Part shown: in pieces, positions 3,156-7,163 of the stretch | Layout: each line of letters starts with the position of its first letter | Numbering within the stretch: the stretch's first letter is position 1 | Translations under genes and position numbers: made by a program | Sequence record: KY563228.1 | Strand: one strand, 5' to 3' | DNA length: 16,271 nt | The notes under the pieces: generated by a model | Seen by the model: only the letters and a program-made list of their open reading frames with translations | What the model was told of the DNA's origin: nothing | The model's database searches: none

Positions 3156-4163
3156 TTAAAAATTGTTACTTATCCATTCTGCGTACTTCTTATACTCTTT
3201 TTTCGCTAAAGTAAGTAAGTCCAAATAATGCTTTGTTAGGATATTCCCGGGTGTCCTACCTTCTAAGAAGTCTACAATTTCTGAGGGGATTCCGAGACTG
3301 AGCAGTTGGGTGGCCACGAATTTTCTGATATACTTAGGTGGGACTAAATTAAGCTTTCTAACATATTTATCCACATAAGCTTTTGAAATCTTAATTTGTT
3401 TTAGCTCTGTAACATGGAATAAGTAGAAACTCTTCTTTTGACCCCTAGTCCAATTGAGTATATATACGCTAAACCCTTCTTCCCTAATTTCGTTTTCCGG
3501 GTTATAATCGTTTAATACTTTAAGTGCTTCAGTTTCTCTTGAACCGCTTTCCAGTAATAACCTATAAAATGTATGAAGAGTAGGATATTGTTTAACGGTG
3601 ATAAAAGTTTGGCGTACTTCTTCTAATGTCGGCACTTTTAGGTCTGGTCTAGTTTTTTTGACTTTCAGAGTTTCGGGCGGGTCTTTGTTCAGCACGAGTT
3701 TGTAGAAGTTACGCCATGCCTTTATACAATTATTTGACCCTTTTCTTCTTTGCTTAATACACGAGATATACTGTTTTATTGTCTCTTCACTGATATTCTT
3801 ACTACGTAGAGCTAATTCGAATTTGAGTAAATCACTTGCGGAAATTTGAATGTTATTATCAGCCGTGCTTTCCGTGTCCTTTGTGATAACTTCTTTCAAT
3901 TCATCGTAATTAGCATGAGGGGTGTTAGGGGGTATCCCCCTAACGCCGGCCTCCCAAGCCGGTGATCCCGGGTTCAAATCCCGGCGGCCGCATAGTGGGG
4001 GAATCCCCCACACCCCCAATGCTATTTCTACTACCTTATCTAAAGAACCTACGTAACGGTCTCTTCTCTGACCGCCATCACCCTTCTCTATTAAGTAAAC
4101 ATAATACTTTCCCTTAACCTCACGAATCCTTATATCACCAAATGTGAAAACTTTATTACCCAT
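3156..4163 (-). CDS. int: SSV-type tyrosine integrase, D335 homolog (335 aa from ATG 4163)
   Basis: Catalytic motifs LESGSRETE (R), KYIRKF (R), GRTP and KHY (Y). N-terminus FGDIRIREVKGKYYVYL is typical. The start was moved from the track's 4253 to ATG 4163, which gives 335 aa like SSV1 D335. Confidence 0.96.
   Translation of the reverse strand: MGNKVFTFGDIRIREVKGKYYVYLIEKGDGGQRRDRYVGSLDKVVEIALGVWGIPPLCGRRDLNPGSPAWEAGVRGIPPNTPHANYDELKEVITKDTESTADNNIQISASDLLKFELALRSKNISEETIKQYISCIKQRRKGSNNCIKAWRNFYKLVLNKDPPETLKVKKTRPDLKVPTLEEVRQTFITVKQYPTLHTFYRLLLESGSRETEALKVLNDYNPENEIREEGFSVYILNWTRGQKKSFYLFHVTELKQIKISKAYVDKYVRKLNLVPPKYIRKFVATQLLSLGIPSEIVDFLEGRTPGNILTKHYLDLLTLAKKEYKKYAEWISNNF
3943..3992 (+). 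other. attP: attP: 3' portion of tRNA-Gly(CCC) embedded in the integrase gene
   Basis: Anticodon stem CCGGC/GCCGG with loop CT-CCC-AA (CCC at 3953-3955); T-arm CCGGG-TTCAAAT-CCCGG; acceptor 3' strand CGGCCGC plus discriminator A. The 5' half of the tRNA is absent. Confidence 0.93.
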
Positions 4164-4370
4164 ACCTTCAGCCCATTTATATTTATCACGTAAGCATTTA
4201 AAAAGGATGATAATTATCTTATCGCCCGTTAAACTGAAAGAAGATGATAACAATTCCTCACTTTTGCAAAAAACCGAATTTCGTGGACAGTGCTGCAGTG
4301 TAAAAATTCAATGAGTCTCATCTAAGGTTTTCTGACTGTCTCAACTAATCTTTATTTAGAGAATTTTTGC

Positions 4371-4644
4371 GTAGTAAGGACAATTTATACTACGTTACTA
4401 CGCTCTTTCAATTCAACATTGATTTTATTAAATTAAAAGTAAAAGTAACGTATGTAGTAACGTAGTATGGTGTAGTAAGGATTTTTATTTGAAGTGTATA
4501 GGCATCTTTATTTTTAATACCCCACTATTACCCCCCGCCTTACTACTTATACTACGTTACTACACGTTAATCCGCGTGTAATCTTATGTTGAAATGAAAG
4601 AAAGGTAACGGCGTAGTATAGCTTCAAAAAGTCTCTTATACTAC
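4371..4644. repeat. Nested inverted-repeat region with 11 TACTAC/GTAGTA hexamers
   Basis: 17-nt direct repeat TTATACTACGTTACTAC at 4385-4401 and 4547-4563; inverted copy at 4454-4468; inverted arms 4404-4419/4586-4601 (15/16) and 4386-4394/4612-4620. Confidence 0.9.
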
Positions 4645-4702
4645 AAAATTTATTCTGTTCCAGAATTTGTTGGTCCATATGTTGGTCCATATGCTGGACC
4701 AT
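4547..4702 (-). CDS. Possible 51-aa ORF (MVQHMDQHMDQQILEQ...) coupled to the nuclease stop; not in the ORF track
   Basis: TGATG stop/start overlap at 4700-4704; open frame to TAA at 4547-4549. It runs through repeat DNA, so it may be non-coding. Confidence 0.3.
   Translation of the reverse strand: MVQHMDQHMDQQILEQNKFCSIRDFLKLYYAVTFLSFQHKITRGLTCSNVV
4669..4702. repeat. 12-bp tandem repeat GTTGGTCCATAT x2 plus a degenerate third copy
   Basis: Copies at 4669-4680 and 4681-4692, then GCTGGACCAT. TGGTCCA (4683-4689) and TGGACCA (4695-4701) are also mutually inverted. Confidence 0.85.
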
Positions 4703-5301
4703 CACTTAATGAAAGCTTTGAGCCAGTTCTTGAATCTTGAGGGTTTCCAAAATTCCTTCCATGGAATTAAGATATACTCGTTTTCCCCTTTCGCAAACTC
4801 CTTAGTACTTATCGCTATGCCCTTCTTCTTCAAAAGCGTAATATAATCCACTGTGATGAACCTTATTTCACCCTCATTATCTGCTATGTTAGCTATAACT
4901 GCTTTTGCTTTATAGTACTGTTGTAAAACTAAGCCTACTGCATGTTTCACTCCTAAAACAGCTACGTAACTTCCTTTCAAATCCATCCCATGTAACCTAG
5001 AACTACTTTGTCTCTTTGTGAACTGAGTACCAGTTATATCAATATACATATTATATTTAGGAATATAGAAATCGTATTTCTTCTTAGGGTCACCTTCCCA
5101 TGTGTCATCAGTTTTCTCATCTGATAAAACGCCTATGCCGTTTACAACTATATCATTTTCAGATAAGTTAAGTGTAAGCATAAGCCACTTACGGGCTATG
5201 TCTTCCCTTATTGTTGTTAAAGTCCATAATTTAGCGTATTTATCTTTTAATGTGTTAGCAAAAGAATTAGCAGTCACGCGGTCAAACCTCCACCTAATCA
5301 C
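4702..5301 (-). CDS. Putative PD-(D/E)XK-fold nuclease, probable SSV1 D244 / SSV-RH D212 family (199 aa)
   Basis: KYDFYIPKYNMYIDITG resembles the PD...(D/E)xK core; syntenic upstream of int. GTG start at 5301; an alternative GTG downstream of GGAGG would give 191 aa. Confidence 0.6.
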   Translation of the reverse strand: MIRWRFDRVTANSFANTLKDKYAKLWTLTTIREDIARKWLMLTLNLSENDIVVNGIGVLSDEKTDDTWEGDPKKKYDFYIPKYNMYIDITGTQFTKRQSSSRLHGMDLKGSYVAVLGVKHAVGLVLQQYYKAKAVIANIADNEGEIRFITVDYITLLKKKGIAISTKEFAKGENEYILIPWKEFWKPSRFKNWLKAFIK

Positions 5302-5901: not shown

Positions 5902-6359
5902 CAGTTCACCAACCTCCTTAAAGCATCTAATTTCTCTTGTAGATCTTTCATTCTTGAGATTGGCAAAACATACGCGTTCTGCTTTGCGTTAAAGTTGTTC
6001 TTCTGAATCGTTATTAGTAAGCTCTCTAACTCGTTTAACAGTTCCGTCAGCTTTGAGATATCTAATTTGACCTCACTTTTTGCCTCACTTTTACTTATAT
6101 TTATATTGAATACGACATTACTTCCCTGAGTTGACTTGTTAACAATATTTTGAAAAGCTTTTTTCAAGTCTTCAGGAATCTCAATGCCCTTTTCGACCGC
6201 TTTTGATATTATGTACGCAGAAACTAATTGTTTGAGTTCCGCTATATCGTCCTTATTGAGGTCTAAGGCCTCATAGATAACATAAATTGCTGTAGGAATT
6301 CTGACGCCAATAACTTTAGTCCTCTTGGCTTTCAAAATTTTATCTAAAAGATCTACCAT
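5901..6359 (-). CDS. 152-aa protein with an RHH-like N-terminus and C-terminal coiled coil
   Basis: [13 protein letters not shown] is a typical RHH beta-strand followed by a helix; SD GAGGTGA upstream; TGATG coupling to d63. Confidence 0.8.
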
Positions 6360-6366
6360 TTTTTTC

Positions 6367-6702
6367 TCACCTCTCTGAAACTTTTACTAAAACTAACTGA
6401 GTCAAAAATGACGTAAAAGTTGATAATTTACTCAGCCTACGAAAGAGTATATGGGGTATAGTTAGTATTAGAGGGAAAAGTGTTAACAAAGTGTTAACAC
6501 TTTTTATTTTAGTTAAAGTTTGGGGGGGTATACTCTTTTGAAAAGTGAGTAAATAGTAGGAGTTTAACGTTATTTTTGACTCGGGGTTTTTAGACAATTT
6601 TTGACTCAGTGTGAGTAACTTAGAAACGCTATTTGTTGTCATTAGTGACTCAGAGAAATATGACTGAGTAAACATATCGTTTTTGCCTAAATTTTGACTC
6701 AC
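6367..6702 (-). CDS. Low-complexity 111-aa ORF overlapping a large dyad-symmetry element
   Basis: GTGA overlap with the upstream gene suggests coupling, but the S/T/L/K-rich sequence mirrors the DNA repeats and the TGA stop is part of the next gene's SD. Confidence 0.45.
   Translation of the reverse strand: MSQNLGKNDMFTQSYFSESLMTTNSVSKLLTLSQKLSKNPESKITLNSYYLLTFQKSIPPQTLTKIKSVNTLLTLFPLILTIPHILFRRLSKLSTFTSFLTQLVLVKVSER
6387..6701. repeat. Phased dyad symmetry centred at 6490 plus nine T(G/T)ACTC iteron-like motifs
   Basis: Inverted arms 6476-6488/6492-6504 (13/13), 6442-6451/6529-6538 (10/10), 6427-6434/6546-6553 (8/8), 6399-6418/6563-6582 (18/20), 6387-6392/6588-6593 (6/6). Confidence 0.92.
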
Positions 6703-7163
6703 TGAATTTCCACCTCATTTAGTAAATTTAAAATAAAATCAACAATTACCTTACCTTTGTTGGATAATTTATAATATATTCTGGGGTCTGGGCTTACGCT
6801 ATATCTTTGCACTAATCCGAATAATTCTAGTTCATTCAGATACCTCTTGACATACATGCCGTTTGTTTTAGTTAGTTCTTCTATTTTTCTTACATGTAAC
6901 GACCCTTTTCTATATAATAATAGAAGTATCTTTAATTGCTTATCTTCCTTATTATATAAATTATAAAGCGAATAGTGGAAATCGTTAAGCATCTCTAATA
7001 AATTCTTTTGTAGTTTTTTCTTTGGGATAATCTTTATGGATTCTTCTCTCACAACTTCTTCAGTCTCTTCTTCATCCTTAACAACTTCTTCAGTCTCAAC
7101 AACTTCTTCTGTTTCGTTAACTACTTCCTCTTCATCCTTAACAATTTCCTCATCATAATTCAT
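6699..7163 (-). CDS. MarR/ArsR-like winged-helix protein with an acidic repetitive N-terminus (154 aa)
   Basis: C-terminal ILLLLYRKGSLHVRKIEE...VKRYLNELELFGLVQR...RIYYKLSNKGK is a wHTH signature; 21 of the first 42 residues are D/E. Confidence 0.88.
   Translation of the reverse strand: MNYDEEIVKDEEEVVNETEEVVETEEVVKDEEETEEVVREESIKIIPKKKLQKNLLEMLNDFHYSLYNLYNKEDKQLKILLLLYRKGSLHVRKIEELTKTNGMYVKRYLNELELFGLVQRYSVSPDPRIYYKLSNKGKVIVDFILNLLNEVEIQ
7051..7144. repeat. In-frame internal duplications encoding the acidic tail
   Basis: ACAACTTCTTCAGTCTC at 7051-7067 and 7081-7097; TCTTCATCCTTAACAA at 7069-7084 and 7129-7144. Confidence 0.85.

Follow-up and report, generated by a model that had tools for sequence, protein, structure and literature searches.

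A probable Sulfolobales plasmid replication origin, captured without its rep gene, in the genome of the spindle-shaped virus SSV10

The DNA stretch analysed here (the window, 16,271 bp) shows no difference from the full circular genome of Sulfolobus spindle-shaped virus (SSV) Lassen, SSV10 (KY563228.1), and positions refer to it unless a plasmid or contig is named. The subject of this work is a palindromic element at 4371-4656, upstream of the integrase gene int. Sequence comparison indicates that this element, together with a flank starting at 4303, is probably a complete replication origin of a Sulfolobales plasmid, pRN-family or pSSVi-like, which was captured by SSV10 without rep, the gene of the plasmid replication protein Rep. 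What the element is has good support, unlike any present role of it in SSV10. The term orphan origin is preferred to complete replicon, because the adjacent rep gene is missing in SSV10. An earlier note, made from the letters of the sequence, had described at this place a nested dyad resembling an origin and had suggested that it might be a packaging or segregation site or a captured module; the last suggestion is the one borne out by the comparative evidence. The dyad and the guess that it is an origin are already published, whereas the nature of the element was not. Goodman and Stedman (2018; PMC6080066) described in the region upstream of int five novel open reading frames (ORFs), three of them on a hypothetical transcript 'Tori', and suggested a large stem-loop in 'ORF A49' as a possible site of replication initiation. 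Their 'Tori' region is the same DNA as the element, and it was treated there as novel, SSV10-specific and coding, without a link to plasmids, Rep or iterons.

The element contains 11 TACTAC/GTAGTA hexamers (at 4371, 4388, 4396, 4454, 4462, 4472, 4541, 4550, 4558, 4613 and 4639), all exactly where the earlier note had placed them. The genome as a whole contains 24 copies versus 10.3 +/- 3.2 in shuffled sequences, and the clustering of 11 copies within 274 bp, where ~0.2 are expected, has a Poisson P of ~1e-15. The hexamers are held in three recurring classes of 9-mers (CCTTACTAC, TATACTACG and CGTTACTAC), which follow one another in identical a-b-c order in both inner arms with a spacing of 8-10 bp. 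Three minus-strand iterons (4454-4477) are thus separated from three plus-strand ones (4541-4563) by a spacer of 57 bp (4481-4537). The spacer begins with 39 nt of 82% A+T and finishes with the C-tracts of CCCCACTATTACCCCCCG, in agreement with the earlier description. All four arm pairs named previously are real: the inner dyad comprises 4453-4468/4549-4564 (16/16 complementary) and 4472-4480/4538-4546 (9/9), the outer dyads 4404-4419/4586-4601 (15/16) and 4386-4394/4612-4620 (9/9). An additional pair, 4387-4401/4454-4468 (15/15), had escaped notice. When folded as single-stranded DNA, the region 4355-4660 gives -48.9 kcal/mol versus -23.8 +/- 3.1 for shuffled sequences (z = -8.2). A search of Rfam returned nothing except sub-threshold noise from microRNA hairpins. 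The skew of G over C was tried as an indicator of the origin and dropped, as it tracks the coding strand and is uninformative at the element.

A blastn search with 4254-4700 against 50,697 phage records found SSV10 itself and no other fusellovirus record, and in the plasmid collections no match was found beyond chance ones in Borreliella. Scans of IMG/VR with exact 15-mers and with a loose triple-hexamer pattern gave single chance matches and tandem repeats of unrelated viruses. A self-complementary pattern with two hexamers on either side of a 70-100 nt gap was also scanned; in viral contigs and in genome contigs (one genome per species) it retrieved unrelated, mostly bacterial chance matches. 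The same pattern applied to metagenome contigs and combined with local blastn revealed, among unrelated matches, eight homologous contigs from hot springs, including two overlapping copies of one sequence. The BLASTN check proposed in the earlier note was empty beyond SSV10 itself for phage and plasmid collections, while counterparts do exist in metagenomic contigs, among them a plasmid and an integrated element. The homology covers 4346/4371-4656 of the window with 71-87% identity over 285-354 bp. The closest copies are found in contig L236 (87% identity between window 4303-4656 and L236 2113-2477) and in L266 (85% for window 4346-4665). The edges of homology coincide with the edges of the dyad, and the genes flanking the element in the contigs are mostly unrelated to those of SSV10.

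In all eight homologous contigs the element is located directly 3' of a large ORF, 600-664 aa long where complete. An equal arrangement is seen in two further contigs, referred to here as family B, which encode an ORF of 803 aa and have no blastn homology to the window. The element starts 60-120 nt beyond the stop codon of the large ORF in all ten, and in the eight homologous contigs the right inner arm lies 86-98 nt from this stop. The sole block conserved between the contigs consists of the ORF and the element (~2.2 kb) and begins exactly at the left edge of the latter. This edge is formed by the left small dyad, the corresponding helix of which (helix 1) is paired in 98.6% of cells of the alignment of 8 homologues.

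Sequence evidence points to the large ORF being the replication helicase of the plasmid, and it is called Rep below. It contains the Walker A motif GKxKTGKTT. In tblastn it matches the helicase half of pIT3 RepA (E = 8e-34) and a protein of pKEF9 (E = 3e-42). Neither Pfam nor PHROG gave a match to Rep, and a Rep profile found none among PDB sequences, so that a fold search was needed. The AlphaFold (AF2) model, for which the alignment was made without the PLSDB-derived row, has a mean predicted local distance difference test score (pLDDT) of 79.6. Its best PDB folds are the Cch helicase of the staphylococcal cassette chromosome SCCmec (2e-10), poxvirus E5/D5, PriRep1 and the primase-helicase of SaPI5, a staphylococcal pathogenicity island (SaPI); all of them are initiator helicases of mobile elements. 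The C-terminus of the model has a helix-helix-strand-strand layout, the fold search having been performed with the whole Rep.

A database search yielded 42 relatives of Rep, including chromosomal copies in three cultured Sulfolobaceae, namely Sulfuracidifex tepidarius, Saccharolobus islandicus and Saccharolobus shibatae B12. No relative was found in phage records or in IMG/VR contigs. The 'DNA helicase' of SSV7, SSV9 and ASV1 was considered as a Rep relative and rejected, since the alignment is limited to the Walker A motif. The S. shibatae B12 protein is 57% identical to the plasmid Rep and carries Prim-Pol and pRN1_helical domains. This protein (L292, 4001-6580) is a chimera, the N-terminal half of which matches ORF904 of pRN1 (E = 1e-125) and the C-terminal half the helicase described here; judging from the sequence, it would be a product of domain shuffling among initiators of Sulfolobus plasmids.

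In loci with Reps of 46-66% identity, the sequence following rep bears no similarity to that of SSV10, but the layout is kept. A small dyad is followed by a TTTCAATT box, three iterons, a spacer of 57-90 bp (AT-rich, then a CCCAC(T)CT-like motif), three inverted iterons, a second TTTCAATT box and another small dyad, with the rep stop 70-170 nt off; the box thus accompanies the iteron arms in distant relatives too. The CCCAC(T)CT-like motif occupies the equivalent spot in L236, L286, L276, L256, S. shibatae B12, L295, L296 and L297. In L256 and L261 the left half of the spacer is turned into G-tracts (GGGGGTGGGGGTGGGGGG) complementary to the conserved C-tracts, which gives a longer hairpin and a run that could form a G-quadruplex.

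What changes within this layout is the iteron word, and it co-varies with Rep: six words are found across Reps of 46-66% identity. The SSV10 group shares GTAGTAAGG with S. tepidarius (Rep 63% identical), while TTAGTAAGG / TTAGTAATG is used in S. shibatae and S. islandicus, TAAGAAGG in L296, TACGGAAGG in L295, TAAGGTGGG in L297 and TATCCAGGG in L299. Reps with words other than GTAGTAAGG are 46-57% identical over their full length, or 66% in the case of the truncated S. islandicus copy. The C-terminal 68 residues are the most divergent part of Rep, with 26-44% identity versus 53-68% for the ATPase domain. One predicted C-terminal helix reads LI[SG]D[LI]G in Reps of the GTAGTA type versus [LI]x[KRN]EL[GN] in the others. 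This correlation with the iteron word is suggestive only, as the sample is small and family B has GTAGTA too. Family B contigs (L233, 2865-2976; L247, 2705-2816) present GTAGTA in another layout, with six direct GTAGTAAT units, an AT-rich gap and two inverted units, and further GTAGTA units are found within the 3' end of their rep.

The dyad itself appears to be under constraint. Across 8 homologues 94.5% of cells are paired and 10 pairs show compensatory changes, also between the iterons (for example, AC/GT versus TT/AA); both the paired fraction and the covariation score exceeded those of all 500 shuffles. The SSV10 copy has 57 of 64 Watson-Crick pairs, compared with 57-59 in six of the seven plasmid copies and 49 in the integrated copy L276, and it has kept all 11 hexamers with 7 lineage-specific changes. 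Such intactness would be expected after a recent capture as well as under continued selection. Decay of the SSV10 copy was considered and dropped, its pairing being like that of the plasmid copies, neither clearly decaying nor clearly selected.

It is hardly credible that the element is a miniature inverted-repeat transposable element (MITE) or a functionless palindrome arisen by chance or duplication. The terminal hexamers are indeed inverted and the slot between int and the nuclease gene is variable among SSVs, but in at least 15 loci the element occurs once per replicon and keeps a constant spacing behind rep, its architecture is conserved despite differing words and with compensatory changes, and no target-site duplication was seen at it. 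Very improbable too is a chromosome-type origin read by Orc1/Cdc6 or WhiP of the host, the reading behind the label ORB-DUE (origin recognition boxes with a DNA unwinding element) that had been attached to this DNA. Its inverted repeats, AT-rich region and G/C-tract fit a generic archaeal origin, in which replicator and initiator are paired and inverted repeats flank an AT-rich unwinding region beside the initiator gene (PMC4010727). However, the SSV10 element is bordered by genes of an integrase and a nuclease and has no initiator gene, neither Orc1/Cdc6 nor WhiP, adjacent to it. The iterons are 9-bp units spaced by 8-10 bp, versus the longer ORB of the review description (PMC4010727), and their word changes with a plasmid helicase of the SF3/MCM (superfamily 3/minichromosome maintenance)-like kind rather than with Orc1/Cdc6. 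Furthermore, the pattern scan of one genome per species gave bacterial chance matches only, and the genomic relatives linked to Rep are all situated in integrated plasmids bounded by int fragments, none of them at a chromosomal origin. The label is therefore not retained, while the origin-like character proposed with it stands, as inverted repeats surround an AT-rich core and the relatives adjoin the gene of a plasmid replication helicase.

The replicons that carry the element are plasmids, free or integrated. L236 is circular (5.2 kb, with a 127-bp terminal overlap) and encodes PlrA (PF05584, E = 2e-27), the signature regulator of pRN family plasmids; its rep is preceded by a small E61-like ORF. 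Split halves of an SSV-type int and a transfer RNA (tRNA) gene bound the integrated elements of L276 and S. tepidarius. The S. shibatae copy has int fragments and a tRNA-like sequence, with a gene order matching that of L276 and S. tepidarius. Fragments of int are present in L276, L292 and L293, and each of the three also has a tRNA gene. The order in integrated copies is int - element - rep, and int - element is likewise found in SSV10.

The occurrence of the element both in a virus and in plasmids of the kind packaged by SSVs could also mean that it is, as the earlier note had suggested, a packaging or segregation site, here one common to SSVs and their satellite plasmids. Such a role is highly improbable, because the DNA is missing from all other fusellovirus records, among which are SSV1 and SSV2, the helpers reported to package pSSVx and pSSVi. 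Packaging of pSSVx into SSV particles has been reported (PMC2926602). The fixed position of the element and its co-variation with Rep indicate replication instead, and no evidence for packaging or segregation was found.

Preference for a plasmid origin is strengthened by comparison with pRN1. In this plasmid, two groups found, replication depends on a stem-loop of 100 nt immediately 3' of orf904; the stem-loop has to stay intact, is movable and supports replication with Rep in trans (Berkner 2014, PMC4234260; Joshua 2013, PMC3869888). Re-examination of the pRN1 sequence shows that the stem-loop consists of two inverted 21-nt arms, each with two TGTCCA units, around a 58-nt spacer (78% A+T) with CCCACCGTG. 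Both origins thus have long dyad arms and an AT-rich spacer of ~58 nt with a CCCAC/GTG motif. Both lie just downstream of the rep stop (53 nt in pRN1 versus 60-120 nt in SSV10-type plasmids) and belong to pRN-family Sulfolobus plasmids, as judged for the latter from the PlrA gene of L236. Nevertheless, there is no detectable sequence similarity between the pRN1 origin and the SSV10 element. A prim-pol half is missing from the plasmid Rep, whose helicase half shows no BLAST similarity to that of ORF904; only pIT3 and the S. shibatae chimera connect the two. Moreover, the SSV10 element has 11 explicit iterons and two extra flanking dyads, whereas pRN1 was described by Berkner et al. as having no iteron structure (PMC4234260), and SSV10 has no rep.

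Two other plasmids provide side observations on this point. Directly after rep, pIT3 (L291, 44-267) has six 11-bp ATGTCCATTGT iterons and inverted copies. The stem-loop arms of pRN1 (L300, 5050-5200), TTATGTCCATAGTGTCCAACT, are built from the pIT3 iteron word; the pRN1 'stem-loop' thus looks like the same kind of device, with each arm holding two iterons. In pKEF9 (L290, 5003-5363) the place right after the Rep homologue is occupied not by an iteron dyad but by a mini-CRISPR (clustered regularly interspaced short palindromic repeats) array of six repeats, with a 24-nt repeat and a period of 63-67 bp.

A description of such an origin also comes from bacteria. SaPI origins carry, right after rep, 6-12 penta- or hexanucleotide iterons, which flank an AT-rich centre in two halves of opposed orientation. 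A C-terminal winged helix recognises these iterons, and loading of two hexamers, one to either side, is assumed (PMC9371898). In the number of iterons (11 hexamers), the position downstream of rep in the plasmids, the AT-rich centre and the opposed iterons, the SSV10 element would, by this analogy, fit the description point for point. The model of Rep from SSV10-type plasmids matches Cch, PriRep1 and SaPI5 PriRep. On the other hand, the hosts of SaPI and SCCmec are bacteria, and sequence identity is 9-14%, so the relationship is at the level of fold alone.

In its native setting the element lies 3' of the gene of an initiator helicase of ~650 aa with a P-loop ATPase core and a C-terminal domain of putative winged-helix-like type. 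By analogy with the self-loading helicases of SaPI and SCCmec and with the pRN1 origin, the following mechanism can be proposed. The C-terminal domain may read the 9-bp iterons with the core GTAGTA. One Rep hexamer would assemble on each arm of three iterons, with the arms facing each other, and the AT-rich spacer of 57 bp would melt between the two hexamers. Priming may begin at the conserved GTGGGG/CCCCAC motif.

The integrase and nuclease genes border the element in SSV10 as stated earlier, and domain matches confirm both of them. To the left lies int (3156-4253, minus strand), of the SSV type, with Phage_integr_3 and SSV1_ORF_D-335 domains; to the right lies F199, a VirArc_Nuclease (PF12187) of the PD-(D/E)XK type. 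Homology to the plasmids stops at 4656, within ~6 nt of the position of the Rep stop in plasmids; the stop of L236 Rep (TCA at 2481-2483) aligns with window 4660-4662. On the other side, SSV10 and the Yellowstone SSV MK054227 (L304) are alike from int through a block of ~40 bp (4237-4275, about 285-325 in MK054227) and diverge immediately afterwards. This block is shared with the integrative plasmid L276, whose positions 257-302 are 91% identical to window 4235-4279. In the elements of S. shibatae and S. tepidarius, int(N) is preceded by similar GTGGAGTTGAAAG...AATTC strings. The block is probably the promoter or regulatory region of int and, judging from the alignments, the probable left crossover point of recombination between virus and plasmid. 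Acquisition of int together with the origin was considered and rejected: the integrase of SSV10 is 74% identical to that of SSV2 and at most 45% identical to plasmid integrases. It is an ordinary fusellovirus integrase, and therefore only ~350 bp of plasmid DNA were captured.

The plasmids pSSVi and pXZ1 are integrative pRN-like plasmids with SSV-type integrases, which coexist and exchange genes with fuselloviruses. A transfer of int from SSV4 to pXZ1 was reported by Peng (2008). The elements of L276, S. tepidarius and S. shibatae resemble these plasmids in having int, origin and rep within ~5-6 kb and in being integrated at tRNA genes. Closely related int genes in pXZ1 and a fusellovirus (PMC8371274, PMC2926602) and extra replication of pSSVi upon SSV2 infection (PMC8371274) have been described. 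In the SSV10 case, by contrast, it was the origin and not int that was transferred, with a plasmid as donor and the virus as recipient.

In SSV10 itself no Rep-like ORF was detected in a six-frame search with the Rep profile (best E = 0.27). Therefore, by the mechanism proposed above, the origin could fire only with a cognate Rep of the GTAGTA type in trans, which might be supplied by a co-resident or integrated plasmid. Without such a Rep the element would be silent cargo in the slot that separates int from the nuclease gene. The right end of the element may also serve to terminate the T5 transcript; by sequence, the runs of T on the minus strand at 4625-4629 and 4645-4648 could act as terminators.

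Several points weigh against this reading of the element. The binding of iterons by Reps of this family is argued here from analogy, and in pRN1 specific binding of ORF904 to the origin could not be demonstrated (PMC4234260, PMC3869888). Activation in trans presupposes a putative GTAGTA-type Rep in the host of SSV10. Reps of family B, which are only ~24% identical, share GTAGTA and so blur a simple rule of one word for one Rep. The published Tn5 insertions (PMC6080066) also count here. Those at 4468 in the left inner arm and at 4619 in the right small dyad were non-functional (0 of 3 positive trials each), which silent cargo does not predict. From the Tn5 table of that study it can be calculated that a functional mutant fails all three trials with P ~0.03-0.06 and that two false negatives have P ~0.003 or less, so that something in the element probably matters to SSV10. 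The insertion at 4545 in the right inner arm was functional (2 of 3 positive trials); it splits the inner dyad and speaks against the requirement for an intact dyad, and by analogy an insertion of this type would be expected to inactivate an origin like that of pRN1. The fourth insertion, at 4699 in codon 2 of E52, was functional as well (5 of 9).

The two non-functional insertions would be explained if the element had been exapted as the origin of the virus, as in the published 'Tori' idea, and needed for its firing not the plasmid Rep but proteins of the host or a viral one, for example the DnaA-like C250. This is also consistent with the SSV10 copy being as intact as the plasmid copies (57/64 pairs, 11/11 hexamers) and with two changes of the SSV10 lineage that improve or preserve symmetry (alignment columns 196 and 105/221). 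We nevertheless regard exaptation as unlikely, although it ranks second after the orphan origin. No other fusellovirus record contains DNA of the element or a Rep relative, though all fuselloviruses must replicate; elsewhere the element is always tied to a Rep that co-varies with the iterons; and SSV10 tolerates the splitting of the inner dyad by the insertion at 4545. As a family-wide site, the dyad at 6390-6709, which is common to other SSVs, is at least an equal candidate.

This second dyad, situated within annotated ORF F102, has GAGTCAAAAAT/TTTTTGACTC words and a 26-nt inner dyad (6426-6451/6529-6554). SSV-RH (ORF D110) and several Yellowstone SSVs share it with 79-85% conservation, and the GC skew changes sign over 6301-6750, unlike in the flanking minus-strand genes. 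Being common to several SSVs, the second dyad is a candidate cis element of the virus itself. The statement that the genome has two dyads with different motifs holds, and as their words differ, the description of them as unrelated is correct too.

All four Tn5 results would fit a different explanation, in which the region is important because it codes for E52, A49 or both as small essential proteins, the repeats being there incidentally. The lethal insertion at 4619 is in the middle of E52, while that at 4699 is at codon 2, with ATG codons downstream, and is tolerated. The tolerated insertion at 4545 is 2 nt beyond the E52 stop and late in A49, and the lethal one at 4468 is early in A49. This explanation, however, places third and is somewhat less likely than exaptation. 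The E52 frame is interrupted by stops or frameshifts in seven of seven homologous elements and the A49 frame in three of the seven (L236, L256 and L261). A49 requires an ATT start, and neither it nor E52 nor A35 has a match in Pfam or PHROG. The CSNVV peptide of A49 mirrors the C-terminus of E52 because of the palindrome and is its by-product, and the DNA is conserved as a non-coding dyad beside rep.

The leading place thus remains with an orphan origin that would need a plasmid Rep in trans and would otherwise be silent, with a possible function as T5 terminator. Tentatively, SSV10 might even exploit the captured origin, being over-replicated by the Rep of a co-resident or integrated pRN-type plasmid or using the iteron array to titrate that Rep as a weapon of incompatibility, but this is rather unlikely. 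If true, over-replication would reverse the usual relation of helper and satellite, titration would strike plasmids that parasitise fuselloviruses, and the non-functional Tn5 insertions at 4468 and 4619 would represent a real cis requirement in hosts that carry Rep.

The features of the region are collected in Table 1.

Table 1. Features of the SSV10 genome in and around the putative plasmid origin
Feature	Position	Strand	Description	Basis or remark
Conserved block upstream of int, GTTGAAAGAAGATGATAAnAATTCCnCACTTTTGCAAAAA	4237..4275		Common to other SSVs and integrative plasmid L276	Alignments
Plasmid-derived flank	4303..4370		Common to closest plasmid copies only (L236, L266)	blastn
Left small dyad	4371..4403		Inverted iteron GTAGTAAGG (4371-4379) facing two direct iterons, TATACTACGTTACTAC (4386-4401)	Left edge of block common to all homologues
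TCTTTCAATTCAACAT box	4404..4419		Pairs with 4586-4601	Helix 2, 96% paired
Left inner arm	4442..4480		AAGTAACG and three minus-strand iterons (4454, 4462, 4472)	Helices 4 and 5
Spacer, presumed unwinding region	4481..4537		AT-rich, then asymmetric conserved CCCCACT..TTACCCCCC; GTGGGG on minus strand	
Right inner arm	4538..4575		Plus-strand iterons CCTTACTAC, TATACTACG, TTACTAC and degenerate CGTTAAT	
ATGTTGAAATGAAAGA box	4586..4601		Partner of 4404-4419	TGAAAGAA invariant across homologue alignment
Right small dyad	4612..4644		CGTAGTATA facing TATACTAC	Helix 8, 94.5% paired
AAAATTTATTCT tail	4645..4656		Where all plasmid homology stops	Alignment
Annotated ORF E51/E52	4547..4702	minus	Probably no conserved gene	Two thirds read from the putative origin element
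Annotated ORF A49, ATT start	4432..4581	plus	Probably not a gene	Overlaps E51/E52

At the right junction, 4657-4704 is filler specific to SSV10, with a direct repeat (ATTTGTTGGTCC/ATATGTTGGTCC) and an inverted TGGACCA; it encodes the N-terminus of annotated E52 (MVQHMDQHMDQ...). The junction of int and the nuclease gene has a different content in other fuselloviruses. In SSV2 (NC_005265, 2901-3181) a 62-bp unit is repeated 4.5 times in tandem. In MK054227 the junction (326-556) contains the unrelated palindromes CTCCTAAGGAG and GCTGCATGCAGC, and the GCTGCATGCAGC motif also adjoins the origin of plasmid L276. From these sequences, the slot between int and the nuclease gene appears to be a variable, repeat-laden cargo site in fuselloviruses.

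To our knowledge, no fusellovirus origin has been mapped functionally. In the literature searched we found no prior description of the iteron architecture of this family of archaeal plasmid origins, of the co-variation of its words with Rep, or of an origin copy without Rep inside a virus genome. For the annotation of SSV10 the finding means that two or three of the 'novel ORFs' (E52, A49) most likely owe their existence to a palindrome that does not code. For Sulfolobales plasmids and integrated elements it defines a family of origins with three inverted iterons, a spacer and three more iterons, in which the Rep-specific words make the specificity of initiator for origin directly testable and to which the pRN1 'stem-loop' may belong as the same device with two iterons per arm. 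It also provides a link between domains of life, as these archaeal replicons resemble the bacterial SaPI and SCCmec with their self-loading helicases at the level of fold and architecture. As for the direction of exchange, the origin would have moved from plasmid to virus, to a site beside int, where exchange between viruses and plasmids is documented. If the orphan origin is indeed active in trans, this would be a new kind of interplay between archaeal viruses and plasmids.

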